The position numbers were made by a program, and so were the translations under genes. The notes under the pieces were generated by a model that saw nothing but the letters and a program-made list of their open reading frames with translations, was not told where the DNA came from and ran no database searches. From the sequence record NC_061450.1: a DNA stretch of 64,000 nt. The stretch is one strand, 5' to 3'. Shown here in pieces: positions 39,653-54,821 of the stretch; positions within the stretch are counted from its first letter, which is position 1; every line of letters starts with the position of its first letter.

Positions 39653-40161
39653 TACAACGTCTGAGGAGACGCACAGTGACTCGAATGAATGAACGCCAGA
39701 AACACGAAGCACGTAATTCAGACCCATACGATTGGCACAACCTGGAAATTGATATCACCAAGCTGTTGTTGCTTGCCGAAGATAAAAGAAAGTCTGTGGT
39801 ATTTGCACCGATGAACTTATTTCCCAAGTTCACCGAGTACAACAATCTAGGCTACGTGTTGCACCAGCTCAATGATTTTCGTCTGAGTTCTTTAATGACT
39901 GAAAATGAGCGAATCAAAGGTCACTGGATTGCGACTGACGGTGATCATCTGGACTACGTTATTTTTCTGCGTCTGCCAGATGCAAACACCGAAGTAGATG
40001 TGTTTGACCCGCGTGACAGAGAGTTGGTCAAGGGGCGTATGCTTTCTCCTACCTTCCTGTGTATGCCTGAGAACTTCGATCTGTTTAAAACAGAAAGCCG
40101 CTAAACATCCGATGCCTGCTTATGCGGGCATTATCAAGTACAACGTCTGAGGAGACGCACA
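39653..40161 (+). repeat. 23-bp identical translation-initiation leader x2
   Basis: TACAACGTCTGAGGAGACGCACA at 39653-39675 and 40139-40161. Confidence 0.9.
39676..40104 (+). CDS. hypothetical early protein
   Basis: GAGGAG SD; GTG start. Confidence 0.8.
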   Translation: MTRMNERQKHEARNSDPYDWHNLEIDITKLLLLAEDKRKSVVFAPMNLFPKFTEYNNLGYVLHQLNDFRLSSLMTENERIKGHWIATDGDHLDYVIFLRLPDANTEVDVFDPRDRELVKGRMLSPTFLCMPENFDLFKTESR

Positions 40162-40671: not shown

Positions 40672-40846
40672 CGATATTATCAAGGTGCTGAAAGAGCAGC
40701 GAGTAGTTACCATCCCACAGAGTCAGAGCAGCATTGTTCCTGACCTGTGCTTCACACTTGACGTGTGGTGCATTCCTCACCGTCGTCGTGATGTAGACAG
40801 CTTACAACATGGCCGTCAGGTGCGTATTGAACTGCGGAATAGTTAA
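40658..40846 (+). CDS. hypothetical protein
   Basis: GAGGA SD. Confidence 0.65.
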   Translation: MRTVNDIIKVLKEQRVVTIPQSQSSIVPDLCFTLDVWCIPHRRRDVDSLQHGRQVRIELRNS

Positions 40847-40854
40847 GCAGCGTT

Positions 40855-40881
40855 TGGCCCAGCAATTTGGGCCATTCTTTT
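40855..40881 (+). terminator. intrinsic terminator
   Basis: TGGCCCA-GCAATT-TGGGCCA-TTCTTTT. Confidence 0.65.
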
Positions 40882-40934
40882 AAGTGTTGTTCAAGACAGC
40901 ATTTAGACGAATATTAACCTGCTATCAGAATCTA

Positions 40935-40986
40935 CAAATACGTGGACAAAAGACGCGTTGTATCACGTTACTGATTGTGAGATAAT
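40935..40986 (+). promoter_or_regulatory. sigma70-type early promoter with upstream element, not followed by an ORF
   Basis: CAAAT-ACG-TGGACAAAAG; -35 TTGTAT 40958; 17 nt; TGa-GATAAT 40981. Confidence 0.75.
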
Positions 40987-40991
40987 AGACG

Positions 40992-41089
40992 TGCAGTATG
41001 AGACGTGAGGAATCGTACTGTAATTGACTGACAACTCTTTGGGCGTACAATCGGCCATCAACATTCCTGTGATTGTACGCTCCTTTTTC
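40992..41089 (+). ncRNA. candidate ~97-nt small RNA
   Basis: Own promoter; 10-bp stem TGCAGTATGA/TCGTACTGTA with 2 G.U pairs; 12-bp terminator stem GGGCGTACAATC/GATTGTACGCTC plus CTTTTT. Confidence 0.55.
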
Positions 41090-41200
41090 AAGTGGCTTTG
41101 AAGTTTAAGGCTACTTGCGAAAGGGTTCGATACCCTTTGAGCGCTGCCGGATTTACGCGGTTTTCACCGACAGTGCTCTCATGCTAAACCGCAAAGGAAA
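41089..41200 (+). ncRNA. structured leader or ncRNA with T-loop hairpin
   Basis: CAAGTGGCTTT/AAGGCTACTTG (2 G.U); AAAGGG-TTCGATA-CCCTTT; GAGCGCTG/CAGTGCTC; alternative GCGGTTT/AAACCGC next to the SD. Confidence 0.5.
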
Positions 41201-41205
41201 TAACC

Positions 41206-41778
41206 ATGCCAGAATTACGCAAGCCTCGTCCAGCAGATAAATTCTCTCAGGCACGCGCTGCAAAGAACTCTCCTGAAAGGCAAGAAGCCGCTGCGCAAAA
41301 GAAAATCTCACGCGGGCCTAAAGCATCTGGTCCTCGTCGCAATGCTATGCAGTTAGAATCGCCGACTAAGATTCGCGATGAAGAACGTGTGTTGAATCTT
41401 GTGCTGTTTATTCTACGCGGCTGGAAACAAGCAAAGGCTGATAGTGAAGCCAGCGCCTCACAGGGCATTATCAAAGTGAGTCGCAAGGAAATTGAAATCG
41501 CATTGCGTGATCTTAAAAACACGCGCTTCACTAAAATCCCGACGTTGATTAATGACGTGCTGGTCTATAACGAAATCGTTGCCGAGTTCGGACAGTGGGT
41601 GTATGTCGAGCACGACCATCCAGACTGGATGTTCATCTTAACGCCTCCGAGTGAGACGTTGGTAACGCGCTGCCGCATTCGTCGCAACAAAGAGACAGGC
41701 GACCTGACGCAACTTATTGCAAGTGAAGCGTTGCTGCCTGTAGAGGACGAATATGAAGAAGACGAGGAGAAAGAATAA
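41206..41778 (+). CDS. hypothetical protein with Arg/Lys-rich N-terminal arm and acidic tail
   Basis: AAAGGA SD; MPELRKPRPADK..KKISRGPKASGPRRN. Confidence 0.85.
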   Translation: MPELRKPRPADKFSQARAAKNSPERQEAAAQKKISRGPKASGPRRNAMQLESPTKIRDEERVLNLVLFILRGWKQAKADSEASASQGIIKVSRKEIEIALRDLKNTRFTKIPTLINDVLVYNEIVAEFGQWVYVEHDHPDWMFILTPPSETLVTRCRIRRNKETGDLTQLIASEALLPVEDEYEEDEEKE

Positions 41779-42068
41779 TGACTATTCAAACTCCTGCTGT
41801 TGTTGCTGAGTCGCTGGTGCATAACGCCCAAAATTATTTTGGGATCAAAGGTAAGTCCTGTACGCGATTTTCAACGACAGAGAAAAACATTCTGTTGCTG
41901 AGTGGTCATAATCGCTATCTTCCTGACGACTATGTTGACCAGCTCAAGCGTTCTTTTCACGATATTGATTGGCTGATGTTTAAAGTTGGCACTGACGACT
42001 ATGCTTTTTTAAGTCTCAGTCAAACCAAAAACTGGTCGCGTCTGTCAATGAAATATCTCGATAAATAA
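41778..42068 (+). CDS. hypothetical protein
   Basis: GAGGAG SD; TAATG coupling. Confidence 0.8.
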   Translation: MTIQTPAVVAESLVHNAQNYFGIKGKSCTRFSTTEKNILLLSGHNRYLPDDYVDQLKRSFHDIDWLMFKVGTDDYAFLSLSQTKNWSRLSMKYLDK

Positions 42069-42080
42069 TTCCTGACAAAT

Positions 42081-42305
42081 AAGAGGGCATCGCATCAGGT
42101 GCCACGATTATAAACTGCAAGCGATTTGCTGGCCCCTGTGCTTACCCACATCCCCCAAGATACAGAGTTGCATTGGGTGCCGGCTCTTTTTTGAAGTGTT
42201 CTGCGAGAGAGCGCTTCACAAAGGTATAGTCCATGATTGTTTCACTTAGACTGCTTATCGTCTCTATGTCCGATGATACGCGTGGCGATAAGCAGTCACT
42301 TTTTT
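42081..42305 (+). ncRNA. candidate structured ncRNA with C-rich loop
   Basis: Nested AAGAG/CTCTT, GGCATC/GGTGCC, TGCAA/TTGCA, CTGTG/TACAG around loop CTTACCCACATCCCCCAAGA; then an 11-bp GCGA-capped hairpin (2 G.U) and a 12-bp perfect terminator stem plus T-run. Confidence 0.5.
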
Positions 42306-42334
42306 ACAGAGCATCAACCAGTCTGTGTTCTGTG

Positions 42335-42386
42335 CAAAAGCGTGGTCAAAATAGCTGTTGTGTTTGACCAGTCTTTATCGTACCAT
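42335..42386 (+). promoter_or_regulatory. sigma70-type early promoter with upstream element
   Basis: CAAAA-GCG-TGGTCAAAAT; -35 TTGTGT 42358; 17 nt; TACCAT 42381. Confidence 0.7.
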
Positions 42387-42446
42387 ATAAACAGTTGAGC
42401 AATAGTGCTCAACACATTGCATATACTAATACTGAGGAGTATTAAC

Positions 42447-43955
42447 ATGGCTCGTATCGAAACTTCTACTAACCTGATTGGCAAAACTATCACTCTGCTG
42501 GACGGCACCAAAGCTAAAATCACTGGCGCCATCGCTAGTGGTTATCAGCACGACAAAGGCACCAAGCGCATCCCAACCCGTTGCGTCGTTAAGAAAGGCA
42601 GTGGTTTTGCTGAAATCGAAAAGCTGCCTATGTCGCAACTGACTGACACTGGCGAAGGTTATGTTGAGCGTAAAGCAACCGCTGCCAAGCCTGCTGCTAA
42701 AACTTCGAAAGCAGCCAAGACCACTAAGGTGGCCGCTAAAACTCCGCGTGCTGCTAAAACTGAAAAAGCCGTCAAGCCTTCTCGCAAGGCAAAAGCTGCC
42801 GAAGAGCCTGCCGAGCCACGCACTCGCGTTCGTCGTAAAAAATCAGCCGCTGCTGAGCCTGTAATGATTCAGGCAGTCGATGAAGATTTTGCTACCTCTC
42901 TGGCGCAGCGCCTGTTTGAGCACCTGAAAGATAACGAACTGTTGCGCCTCAACACTGACAACGCAACGCCTGTAGCTAACGACTACGATCTGAAATACGG
43001 CGTAGAGTTCGCTGAGCCGAACATGATTCACGTCACGCTGGGCATCGAATACGCCATGCCGCAGCCTGAGCCAGAAGCTGGCACTGACGTAGAGCTGGAC
43101 GATGCAGTTGTTGCGCGTGCTGCTAAGAAAGTCGGCAAGACTGTTGGCAAGAAACTTGCCGCAGCGATCAAGAAAGCGTATGGCATCCCTGCTGCTGAGT
43201 TCCTGCCGGGCACCGTGCTGTCACTCAACGAAGCCCAGTTCATCTACTGCGGCCCGTCGAAAGATGATGCAGACACTGCGTATCTGTACAGCGCCGAAAC
43301 TGATAAGTTCCGTCCTGTGACTTCTGTCAATCTGTCCAAGTATGAGCTGGTCATGGACGATGAAGAGGCAGAAGAGGAAGAGGAAGAGGAAGAAGAGGAC
43401 GAAGAAGAAGAGGACGTCGCTGATGATTCTTCCGATGAATATACCTACGTCTCTGTGACTAAGCAGCATCTGGCAGACGTTAGCAAAAGCGTGACCGCCA
43501 AGTATCACCAGAAGATGGCTGATATGTGGGGCATCGATGCAGACGTGCTGGTCCCTGGTCTGGTACTGTCAGATGGCGAAACAACATTCGCATACGTCGG
43601 CTTCAACAGCAAAGGCGCGTTAATCGTTATCGACCCAGAAGATGGCGAACTGATGATCTACAAGAAAGCCGACGTTGACACGCTGACCGACTTCGCTGCT
43701 GTTATCGGCGATGAGGGCGAAGAAGAAGCAGAAGACGACGCCGAAGAAGAAGAAGATGGCGACGACGAAGAAGAGGAAGAGGAAGAAGAGGAAGGCGAAG
43801 ACGACGACTTTGATTTCTCTGATGACGACAACGAAGACTTCTCTGACCTGAACCACGACGAGCTGGTGGACAAAGTGACTGAGCTGGGTCTGGCCAAGCC
43901 ACGCGCTGCTGCTAAAATGTCAGAAGAAGACCTGCGCGAACTTCTGTCTAACTAA
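42447..43955 (+). CDS. multidomain protein with K/A-rich linker, two poly-acidic tracts and HeH-like C-terminus
   Basis: GAGGAG SD; composition; paralogous to 44018. Confidence 0.85.
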   Translation: MARIETSTNLIGKTITLLDGTKAKITGAIASGYQHDKGTKRIPTRCVVKKGSGFAEIEKLPMSQLTDTGEGYVERKATAAKPAAKTSKAAKTTKVAAKTPRAAKTEKAVKPSRKAKAAEEPAEPRTRVRRKKSAAAEPVMIQAVDEDFATSLAQRLFEHLKDNELLRLNTDNATPVANDYDLKYGVEFAEPNMIHVTLGIEYAMPQPEPEAGTDVELDDAVVARAAKKVGKTVGKKLAAAIKKAYGIPAAEFLPGTVLSLNEAQFIYCGPSKDDADTAYLYSAETDKFRPVTSVNLSKYELVMDDEEAEEEEEEEEEDEEEEDVADDSSDEYTYVSVTKQHLADVSKSVTAKYHQKMADMWGIDADVLVPGLVLSDGETTFAYVGFNSKGALIVIDPEDGELMIYKKADVDTLTDFAAVIGDEGEEEAEDDAEEEEDGDDEEEEEEEEEGEDDDFDFSDDDNEDFSDLNHDELVDKVTELGLAKPRAAAKMSEEDLRELLSN

Positions 43956-54784: not shown

Positions 54785-54821
54785 GTAAGCAGTTCTTCAC
54801 TAATAACTGAGGGTTACTATC

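Follow-up and report, generated by a model that had tools for sequence, protein, structure and literature searches.

We analysed a 64,000-nt stretch of sequence record NC_061450.1 (hereafter the window) and, within it, a pair of small genes, gp328 and gp329, together with the non-coding DNA on either side of them. Erwinia phage pEa_SNUABM_5 (MW366843.1; genus Rivsvirus; 267,169 bp) matches the studied region at 100% identity, window position 40800 corresponding to position 243969 of that record. It is one of the PaBG/Lu11-like "hairy" jumbo myoviruses, as are Yoloswag, Alexandra, AD1 and the Dickeya JA phages; this group is described as having sigma-factor genes and no polymerase of its own, the sigma factors being reported to work with the host enzyme (PMC7412058, PMC6143709). 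The surrounding 21 genes all lie on the + strand, as do the features of the locus described below, and all are labelled hypothetical protein. gp327 ends at 40846, gp328 occupies 41206-41778, gp329 occupies 41778-42068 and gp330 starts at 42447. On a crude map of open reading frames (ORFs) over the 64 kb, the two intervening gaps, 40847-41205 (359 nt) and 42069-42446 (378 nt), are the longest in the window (the next measure 279 and 248 nt), which bears out the non-coding flanks of about 360 and 380 nt noticed in a first-pass annotation of the sequence. The stop codon of gp328 and the start codon of gp329 overlap by one base (TAATG) with GAGGAG placed 9 nt upstream of the second start: the genes have the arrangement of a translationally coupled pair, as had been supposed. 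That annotation further took genes and flanking RNAs to be one self-contained module. We find instead an ordinary early operon plus one new regulatory RNA, made up of four separable parts: a copy of an early promoter, a hairpin-plus-terminator RNA of ~96 nt, a ~90-nt leader composed of two hairpins (P1 and P2) and a pseudoknot, and a structured 3' untranslated region (UTR) with two tandem terminators.

RNA from both gaps folds better than shuffled sequence (z = -2.97 for 40992-41092, -2.89 for 41092-41225 and -5.04 for 42118-42308), in agreement with the description of the flanks as mostly structured. No Rfam family reaches its gathering score across the whole window. At E <= 10 within 40800-42500 no match overlaps the leader and nothing falls over 40847-41205; matches elsewhere are at chance level, and those inside 42069-42446 score 13-19 bits, far below gathering scores of 35-80. 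The locus thus holds conserved structured RNAs that are absent from Rfam.

The leader lies immediately upstream of gp328. P1 (41120-41138) resembles a T-arm, with a 6-bp stem and the 7-nt loop TTCGATA; P2 (41139-41178) has 13 pairs, an internal mismatch zone and a loop at 41152-41165; and in the pseudoknot (41157-41192) the sequence GCGGTTT of the P2 loop (41157-41163) pairs with AAACCGC (41186-41192). The 3' strand of the pseudoknot ends 1 nt before the Shine-Dalgarno sequence AAGGA (41194-41198), with the ATG at 41206. Relatives were gathered by protein look-ups rather than by a DNA pattern scan: a metagenome scan with a 17-nt degenerate pattern returned at least 120 chance loci and, among the matches listed, no true new leader, the pattern being too loose. 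The resulting alignment, built without structure guidance, comprises 23 leaders (22 distinct rows), taken from five named phage genera and from relatives that are unclassified or metagenomic. Over the full structure 88.4% of cells are paired, compared to 33-51% when partners are slid by 1-3 columns; 12 pairs are changed on both sides. In 500 shuffles the pairing, the double changes and the covariation all stayed below the values of the real alignment. Within P2, 8 of 13 pairs have changed on both sides and 87% of cells are paired, with more variants in relatives L151, L153 and L016. The 7-bp pseudoknot helix is paired in 100% of cells (22 of 22 distinct rows) and tolerates substitution: CG has become GC in six rows and UA in one, and GC has become GU in seven. 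Four versions of the helix exist: GCGGTTT/AAACCGC, GGGGTTT/AAATCCC, CTGGTTT/AAACCAG (L153) and CAGACTT/AAGTCTG (Yersinia phage, L016). Two marks of a pseudoknotted operator in a 5' UTR, compensatory change and adjacency to the ribosome-binding site, are therefore both present. Those positions of the P2 loop that stay unpaired hardly vary from genus to genus, and the same holds for the linker from P2 to the 3' strand of the pseudoknot.

The alignment places P1 out of register in some clades, and this hairpin was hence folded separately. A hairpin stands directly 5' of P2 in 23 of 23 leaders; its loop is of the T-loop type in 16, the remainder having unrelated loops of 4-5 nt. The T-loop is thus lineage-specific, and the "T-loop leader" of the first-pass annotation is an apt description of 41120-41138 in this phage that neither extends to all leaders nor corresponds to a tRNA recognised by ARAGORN or Rfam. 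A switch in which the 3' strand of P1 (CCTTTG) pairs with the Shine-Dalgarno region, to be freed by the upstream hairpin P0ext described below, was considered and rejected as a general mechanism, the complementarity being absent in Salmondvirus, L021, L151, L153 and the Yersinia phage; we keep it only as a lineage-specific possibility. A kissing interaction between the loop of P2 and that of the distal terminator t3 (both contain ACGCG) was also discarded, because the presence of the two does not covary across clades.

Conservation of the leader exceeds that of the gp328 protein. In megablast comparisons the best-conserved DNA of the region is non-coding: 41120-41201 is 86-89% identical to relatives that have no other detectable similarity over this 1.65-kb region. 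In the Erwinia phages and AD1 the leader DNA has 82-93% identity against 47-85% for gp328, and Salmondvirus leaders align over 62% of the query at 81% identity, against 33% for gp328. With a covariance model of P1 plus P2, each related locus gives one copy and the window gives a single copy at 107 bits.

Searches with tblastn recovered gp328 homologues in 51 phage records, and by blastn or direct reading the leader stands immediately upstream of the homologue in 50 of these. The 51st, Yersinia phage fHe-Yen9-02, has a homologue (hhalign probability 97%) that overlaps the preceding gene and has no leader upstream. A promoter-plus-leader cassette, with a perfect 14-bp P2 and a 7-bp pseudoknot (29.6 bits), occurs ~450 nt downstream of the homologue in the same early region, where it precedes an orphan ORF of 158 aa that has a basic N-terminus and is non-homologous to gp328. 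The leader is a portable cassette. Every leader-bearing genome examined nonetheless carries a gp328-family gene, and the sole relative without gp328, pEa_SNUABM_30, is also without P2 and the pseudoknot. Co-conservation of both RNAs with both ORFs, which the first-pass annotation had put forward as a check on its module, is seen for P2/pseudoknot with the gp328 family; the presence of gp329, of the short RNA and of the 3' RNA varies from relative to relative without such linkage, the independent occurrence that the annotation had itself named as counting against its module. Of the parts of the locus, only P2/pseudoknot travels with the gp328 family, and the locus as a whole is not a self-contained unit.

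The leader is preceded by a promoter and a short RNA. Promoter P_A (40934-40986) consists of GGACAAAAG at 40944-40952, a -35 element TTGTAT (40958-40963), a 17-nt spacer and a -10 element GATAAT (40981-40986). Folding places a 10-bp hairpin at 40992-41022, at the 5' end of the short RNA, with a conserved loop motif, CGTGAGGAAT (41004-41013), on stems that differ: in nine relatives the loop core CGTGAGG is constant across five different stem sequences. This loop carries a Shine-Dalgarno-like core with no conserved ORF behind it, and a leader peptide was rejected, the small ORFs differing or vanishing in L148, pEa_SNUABM_7, L146 and L147. The hairpin is followed by t1 (41041-41088), an intrinsic terminator inside the leader region with a 13-bp stem, a 16-nt loop and a T5 run (fold), whose stem shows a compensatory change between the window and L148 with the loop unchanged. 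A terminator occupies this position in 16 leader-bearing relatives and in pEa_SNUABM_30 (Yoloswag has two in tandem) and is absent in Salmondvirus-type phages: no terminator lies between promoter and P1 in the Salmondvirus phages (JA11, JA29, L018 and L152), L151, L153 or the Yersinia phage. From their sequences, t1 and the 5' hairpin would delimit an RNA of ~96 nt starting near 40993. The U-tract of t1, a small hairpin and the A-rich 5' strand of P1 can together form a long hairpin, P0ext (41082-41125), that competes with P1; it has 17-19 bp and -15 to -22.6 kcal/mol in 16 of 16 t1-bearing phages, with a swap of CAAG/CTTG for AAAG/CTTT. A sigma-70-like site at 41024-41051 (TTGACT, 16 nt, TACAAT; 10 of 12 consensus positions), with its -10 within the 5' strand of t1, is not conserved in the closest relative, L148. 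A second promoter between t1 and P1 was rejected, there being no acceptable -10 in that interval.

Independence of the short RNA from gp328 is evident in pEa_SNUABM_30 (L158:2306-2665). In this phage, which is not among the 51 records with a tblastn match to gp328, the gp330 promoter is fused to a unit of promoter, 5' hairpin, terminator and decayed P1, and gp328, its partner gene and P2/pseudoknot are missing. Because this phage keeps the promoter-hairpin-terminator unit without a gp328 homologue, the unit is independent of gp328; and as a natural variant lacking gp328, it indicates that gp328 is dispensable for a viable isolate.

The gp328 protein (41206-41778; 190 aa) comprises a basic disordered N-terminal arm (residues 1-56), a folded core (57-178) and an acidic tail. 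In the AlphaFold model the core has a predicted local distance difference test score (pLDDT) of ~90 and the arms are disordered; the N-terminal segment, in which 13 of the first 49 residues are Arg or Lys, is of low confidence and largely disordered. The Arg/Lys-rich arm reported by the first-pass annotation is therefore real, and its assignment to RNA-binding peptides is less secure, since such an arm is equally compatible with DNA and RNA binding. No match was found for gp328 in Pfam, PHROG or PADLOC, among PDB sequences (profile search) or among PDB folds. Foldseek against PDB gave none at E <= 0.001 (best E 0.5, template-modelling (TM) score 0.2); its top matches, pertussis toxin S1, RsmC and others, are noise (E >= 0.5, TM ~0.2, root-mean-square deviation up to 18 Å). 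Against BFVD, Foldseek returned only uncharacterised proteins of the same phage group, and the family does not extend beyond this group: one search gave 57 clusters and an exhaustive one 19 representatives. The family alignment shows a variable Lys/Arg/Pro-rich N-arm that is partly missing in members, a conserved core of ~120 residues and an acidic tail, to which many members add a C-terminal domain of ~35 residues with weak matches to Ish1 (helix-extension-helix).

The second protein, gp329 (41778-42068; 96 aa), belongs to PHROG 26231, of unknown function, and has one other cluster only in a large protein database. Homologues (30-34% identity) occur in only some relatives; in some Alexandraviruses gp329 corresponds to the N-terminal part of a 150-aa second gene. 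It is absent or replaced in many relatives, no second gene being annotated after the gp328 homologue of Alexandra, pEa_SNUABM_2, _3, _35 or 2910A, and distant homologues are found in unrelated 59-kb Klebsiella phages. A single-sequence model is of low confidence (pLDDT 58). The idea that gp329 is a paralogue of the gp328 core has weak BFVD matches to related-phage proteins of ~110-150 aa behind it; profile comparison was negative, and the gp329 model is too poor for a fold search.

The explanation we favour, and to which we give about an even chance of being right, is that gp328-gp329 is an early operon transcribed by host RNA polymerase and governed by a leaky terminator and a pseudoknotted translational operator, possibly bound by gp328. 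The scheme builds on elements that are directly supported: the promoter class, the hairpins and terminators, the covariation of the pseudoknot and its distribution. A sigma-70-type promoter of the repeated class would fire at ~40993. Most transcripts would stop at t1, which is large-looped and probably leaky, giving the ~96-nt RNA, and a fraction would read through to yield an mRNA carrying the P1/P2/pseudoknot leader abutting the Shine-Dalgarno sequence. The pseudoknot, once formed and stabilised by a factor, would act as a translational operator, limiting access of the 30S subunit to the gp328 start. The most likely candidate for that factor is gp328, or the conserved core of gp328, in an autogenous role: a homologue is present in every pseudoknot-bearing genome, and the analogy with known pseudoknotted autogenous operators points the same way. 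Transcription would end in a structured 3' UTR of ~240 nt whose two tandem terminators would insulate the operon from the separately promoted gp330. Output would be set twice, t1 splitting transcription and the pseudoknot controlling translation.

Pseudoknotted autogenous operators are known from T4 gene 32 mRNA and from the E. coli rpsO/S15 leader (RF00114). As in those systems, the pseudoknot lies in the 5' UTR of the putatively regulated gene, close to the ribosome-binding site, and the leader is better conserved than the protein; the combination of basic arm and acidic tail in gp328 recurs in T4 gp32. The differences are that in pEa_SNUABM_5 the pseudoknot directly adjoins the Shine-Dalgarno sequence and has another hairpin upstream of it, and that gp328, whose binding to the operator is putative, has neither an oligonucleotide/oligosaccharide-binding (OB) fold nor an S15 fold according to Foldseek. 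RF00114 itself gives only a chance match inside a coding region, and there is no similarity of sequence or model. The P2/pseudoknot leader is thus a new RNA motif, without a match in Rfam, of a familiar kind.

Several observations weigh against one or other step of the favoured scheme. The gp328 core matches no known RNA-binding fold in PDB, BFVD or profile searches, and some relatives carry what appears from sequence to be a C-terminal domain of a DNA-binding type. The covariation of the pseudoknot comes from few independent events. In fHe-Yen9-02 the leader precedes an unrelated ORF, and simple cis autoregulation is therefore not universal. Lastly, transcripts from the sigma-70-like site at 41024-41051 could lack the 5' strand of t1, making read-through unnecessary in this phage.

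That same fHe-Yen9-02 cassette is among the observations expected if the leader has no ligand at all and is a constitutive element, which either protects the mRNA from decay or serves as a ribosome standby site or enhancer for whichever gene follows. A Salmondvirus-type transcript would start right at P1, and other genes of the phage place the Shine-Dalgarno sequence in or beside small hairpins, which also fits. The presence of one leader copy among at least 8 promoters of the class in 64 kb argues that it is no general expression device, however, and near-invariant unpaired loop nucleotides across genera are typical of a recognition surface rather than of a mere stabiliser. We regard a ligand-free leader as rather unlikely.

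A bolder version of the gp328 hypothesis would make the protein the first member of a new RNA-binding fold, which would recognise P2 and the pseudoknot by their invariant loops and in this way adjust the amount of gp328 itself (or, in the Yersinia phage, of the product of the neighbouring gene), with the hairpin-terminator RNAs that have conserved loops (41004-41013, t1 and t3) acting in trans as early phage small RNAs (sRNAs). We consider this combination unlikely; if true, PaBG/Lu11-like jumbo phages would have an early regulatory layer of their own, centred on RNA.

Small pseudoknot riboswitches show a similar pattern of covarying helices with invariant loops and junctions. P2/pseudoknot could by this token be one of them, a metabolite stabilising the pseudoknot and so gating the ribosome-binding site: its size (~55-65 nt), its H-type pseudoknot abutting the Shine-Dalgarno sequence and its covarying helices with invariant loops and junctions all fit. 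The leader matches no Rfam riboswitch family even at E <= 10, however, the downstream genes have no metabolic signature and the distribution is limited to one phage group. A riboswitch is very unlikely.

The proposal of the first-pass annotation, that both RNAs and both proteins form one ribonucleoprotein system (a type III-like RNA antitoxin and toxin, an N-like antitermination complex or an RNA-based counter-defence unit), is highly improbable and largely refuted by distribution. In its favour are the basic arm of gp328, the abundance of terminators and the close relatives L148 and L154-L156, which retain the overlapping gp328-gp329 pair and the whole arrangement. Elsewhere gp329 is often absent, and the short RNA and gp328 each occur without the other. 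As for the individual variants, the order of promoter, short non-coding RNA, intrinsic terminator and protein gene does recall type III toxin-antitoxin (ToxIN) loci. The tandem direct repeats of such antitoxins are lacking, however (0 rows from Tandem Repeats Finder at minimum score 30; only chance short direct repeats), and neither Foldseek against PDB nor a profile search of PDB sequences revealed a ToxN/AbiQ-type endoribonuclease fold, or any other known nuclease or toxin fold, in gp328. RNA and gene are, moreover, not co-inherited, the RNA occurring alone in pEa_SNUABM_30 and the gene alone in Salmondvirus and metagenomic relatives. With lambda N/nut the locus shares, at the level of architecture, an early gene encoding an Arg/Lys-rich N-terminal arm, a leader with small hairpins and a terminator-rich early region. 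Here t1 lies upstream of the conserved, putatively protein-binding leader hairpins (41120-41192), which is the wrong order for N-type antitermination: the hairpins cannot help polymerase to pass t1. The order would fit for t2 and t3, the terminators after gp329, but gp330 has a promoter of its own; and the arm is variable and partly missing in the gp328 family. Counter-defence gains nothing from PADLOC, which has no match for gp328 and an insignificant one for gp329 (E 0.027).

Barely tenable, finally, is the idea that t1 to P1 make up a tRNA-like element of degenerate or unusual form, either a relic tRNA gene or a mimic attracting tRNA-processing or -modifying enzymes: P1 does fit the canonical T-arm pattern (G-C closing pair, tRNA-type 7-nt loop), and in pEa_SNUABM_13 (L157:1440-1534; MZ475891.1 241695-241789) GenBank and ARAGORN place a 95-nt tRNA-Glu(ttc) exactly over the terminator, U-tract hairpin and P1, but ARAGORN calls no tRNA gene anywhere in the window or in the homologous stretch of four other relatives, the Rfam tRNA model does not match, the T-loop is swapped for unrelated loops in pEa_SNUABM_7, Salmondvirus, L021, L151, L153 and the Yersinia phage, and the supposed anticodon arm is a U-tract hairpin that is present after other terminators too. 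The tRNA-Glu of pEa_SNUABM_13 is most likely a false-positive annotation.

Regulatory RNAs of jumbo phages are almost unexplored, and in the present group, whose genomes measure ~260 kb and whose hosts are the plant pathogens Erwinia and Dickeya, nearly every gene is labelled hypothetical protein. The leader is a covariation-supported motif outside Rfam that provides a handle on the control of one early gene, and offers a possible first function, RNA binding, for the orphan gp328 family. What looks like a "module" in such a genome is a mosaic in which promoter, terminator and leader cassettes are combined. Two database corrections follow, one for the pEa_SNUABM_13 tRNA-Glu and one for a probably spurious Yoloswag ORF. 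The latter (gp311; L011:2338-2535) is among the annotated small ORFs that overlap leaders and are probably spurious; such overlaps also occur in L016 (3688-3780 and 3755-4267). The start of ORF 215 of the Yersinia phage is most likely 3791, directly after the leader, rather than 3755.

P_A belongs to a repeated class. Searching the 64-kb window for GGWCAAAA-N6-TTG with one mismatch allowed gave nine matches against 3.2 expected; eight are on the + strand (6299, 9252, 17410, 25382, 39579, 40944, 42344 and 54726), all of them intergenic. Aligned copies share GCAAAT..CT-GGTCAAAAT, 5-6 bases, a -35-like TTG/TAG hexamer, ~17 bases and a TAnAnT -10 element, a usable early-promoter consensus, and the same design stands upstream of gp328 and gp330 homologues in relatives. 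Six copies are followed within 40-60 nt by a ribosome-binding site; the copy at 40944 instead has ~210 nt of structured RNA, and only this copy (together with a degenerate one at 42073) is followed by terminators. Gene gain and loss among relatives is seen beside the promoter cassettes. The upstream GGTCAA and the -35 TTGAC(C) frequently form an inverted repeat (e.g. 42337-42350 with 42363-42376), which could be the operator of a dimeric regulator rather than only an UP-like element. In several places (42427-42442, 39655-39672 and 54800-54815; L016:3696-3795) the Shine-Dalgarno core TGAGG sits in a short hairpin loop just before the start codon.

Comparable cassettes have been described from T4-type phages, in which PeSL (promoter-early stem-loop) units combine repeated sigma-70-like early promoters with terminator-type stem-loops (PMC2839356, PMC4122927). 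Both have repeated, intergenic sigma-70-like promoters with an A/T-rich upstream element among small orphan genes (eight + strand sites here), and in both neighbouring genes are gained or lost between close relatives. In pEa_SNUABM_5, unlike PeSL, the terminator is downstream of the promoter, which predicts a discrete short RNA; hairpin loops are conserved besides the promoter; and only one or two of at least eight promoters in the window carry such a terminator.

The 3' region begins with hairpin H1 (42086-42103), directly after the gp329 stop, in which four pairs are changed on both sides among close relatives. It is followed by t2 (42128-42192), a weak terminator with a covarying stem and a large C-rich loop before its T-run; by a second U-tract hairpin (42186-42224), which repeats the terminator-plus-U-tract-hairpin design of t1 and P0ext (15 pairs, three changed on both sides); and by t3 (42249-42305), a strong terminator with a perfect 12-bp stem, a 25-nt loop and a T6 run. 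The loop core of t3, TGA(A)TACGCGT, is invariant on stems that occur in three different sequences among relatives. Upstream of the operon an intrinsic terminator, t0 (40855-40881), follows gp327 (8-bp stem, 4-nt loop and T-rich tail in a terminator scan), so that terminators do flank the gene pair on both sides, as the first-pass annotation stated, with t1 and t2 as two more inside. Comparison of the three terminators that precede spacer DNA shows a common motif, a T-run followed by (A/C/G)AAGTG, at 40878-40894, 41084-41100 and 42187-42206.

The segment 42073-42115 bears a weak likeness to the promoter class and overlaps the covarying hairpin H1; for these reasons the structured RNA after gp329 reads as the operon's 3' UTR in pEa_SNUABM_5. 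Yoloswag, pEa_SNUABM_7 and the JA phages have a good promoter copy at the equivalent position. The structured RNA is limited to the Rivsvirus/Yoloswagvirus clade, the whole element being absent from Alexandra-type phages. Beyond it, promoter P_C and the gp330 leader (42334-42446), with a -10 element TACCAT (42381-42386) and the Shine-Dalgarno sequence in a hairpin loop, constitute with gp330 the neighbour's own transcription unit. gp330 (42447-43955; 502 aa; PHROG 33433, function unknown) has an Ala/Lys/Pro-rich, histone-H1-like stretch, long Asp/Glu runs and two internal repeats, and may be a DNA- or nucleoid-binding early protein. At its C-terminus, a motif of helix-extension-helix type resembles the C-terminal domain that some relatives of gp328 carry.

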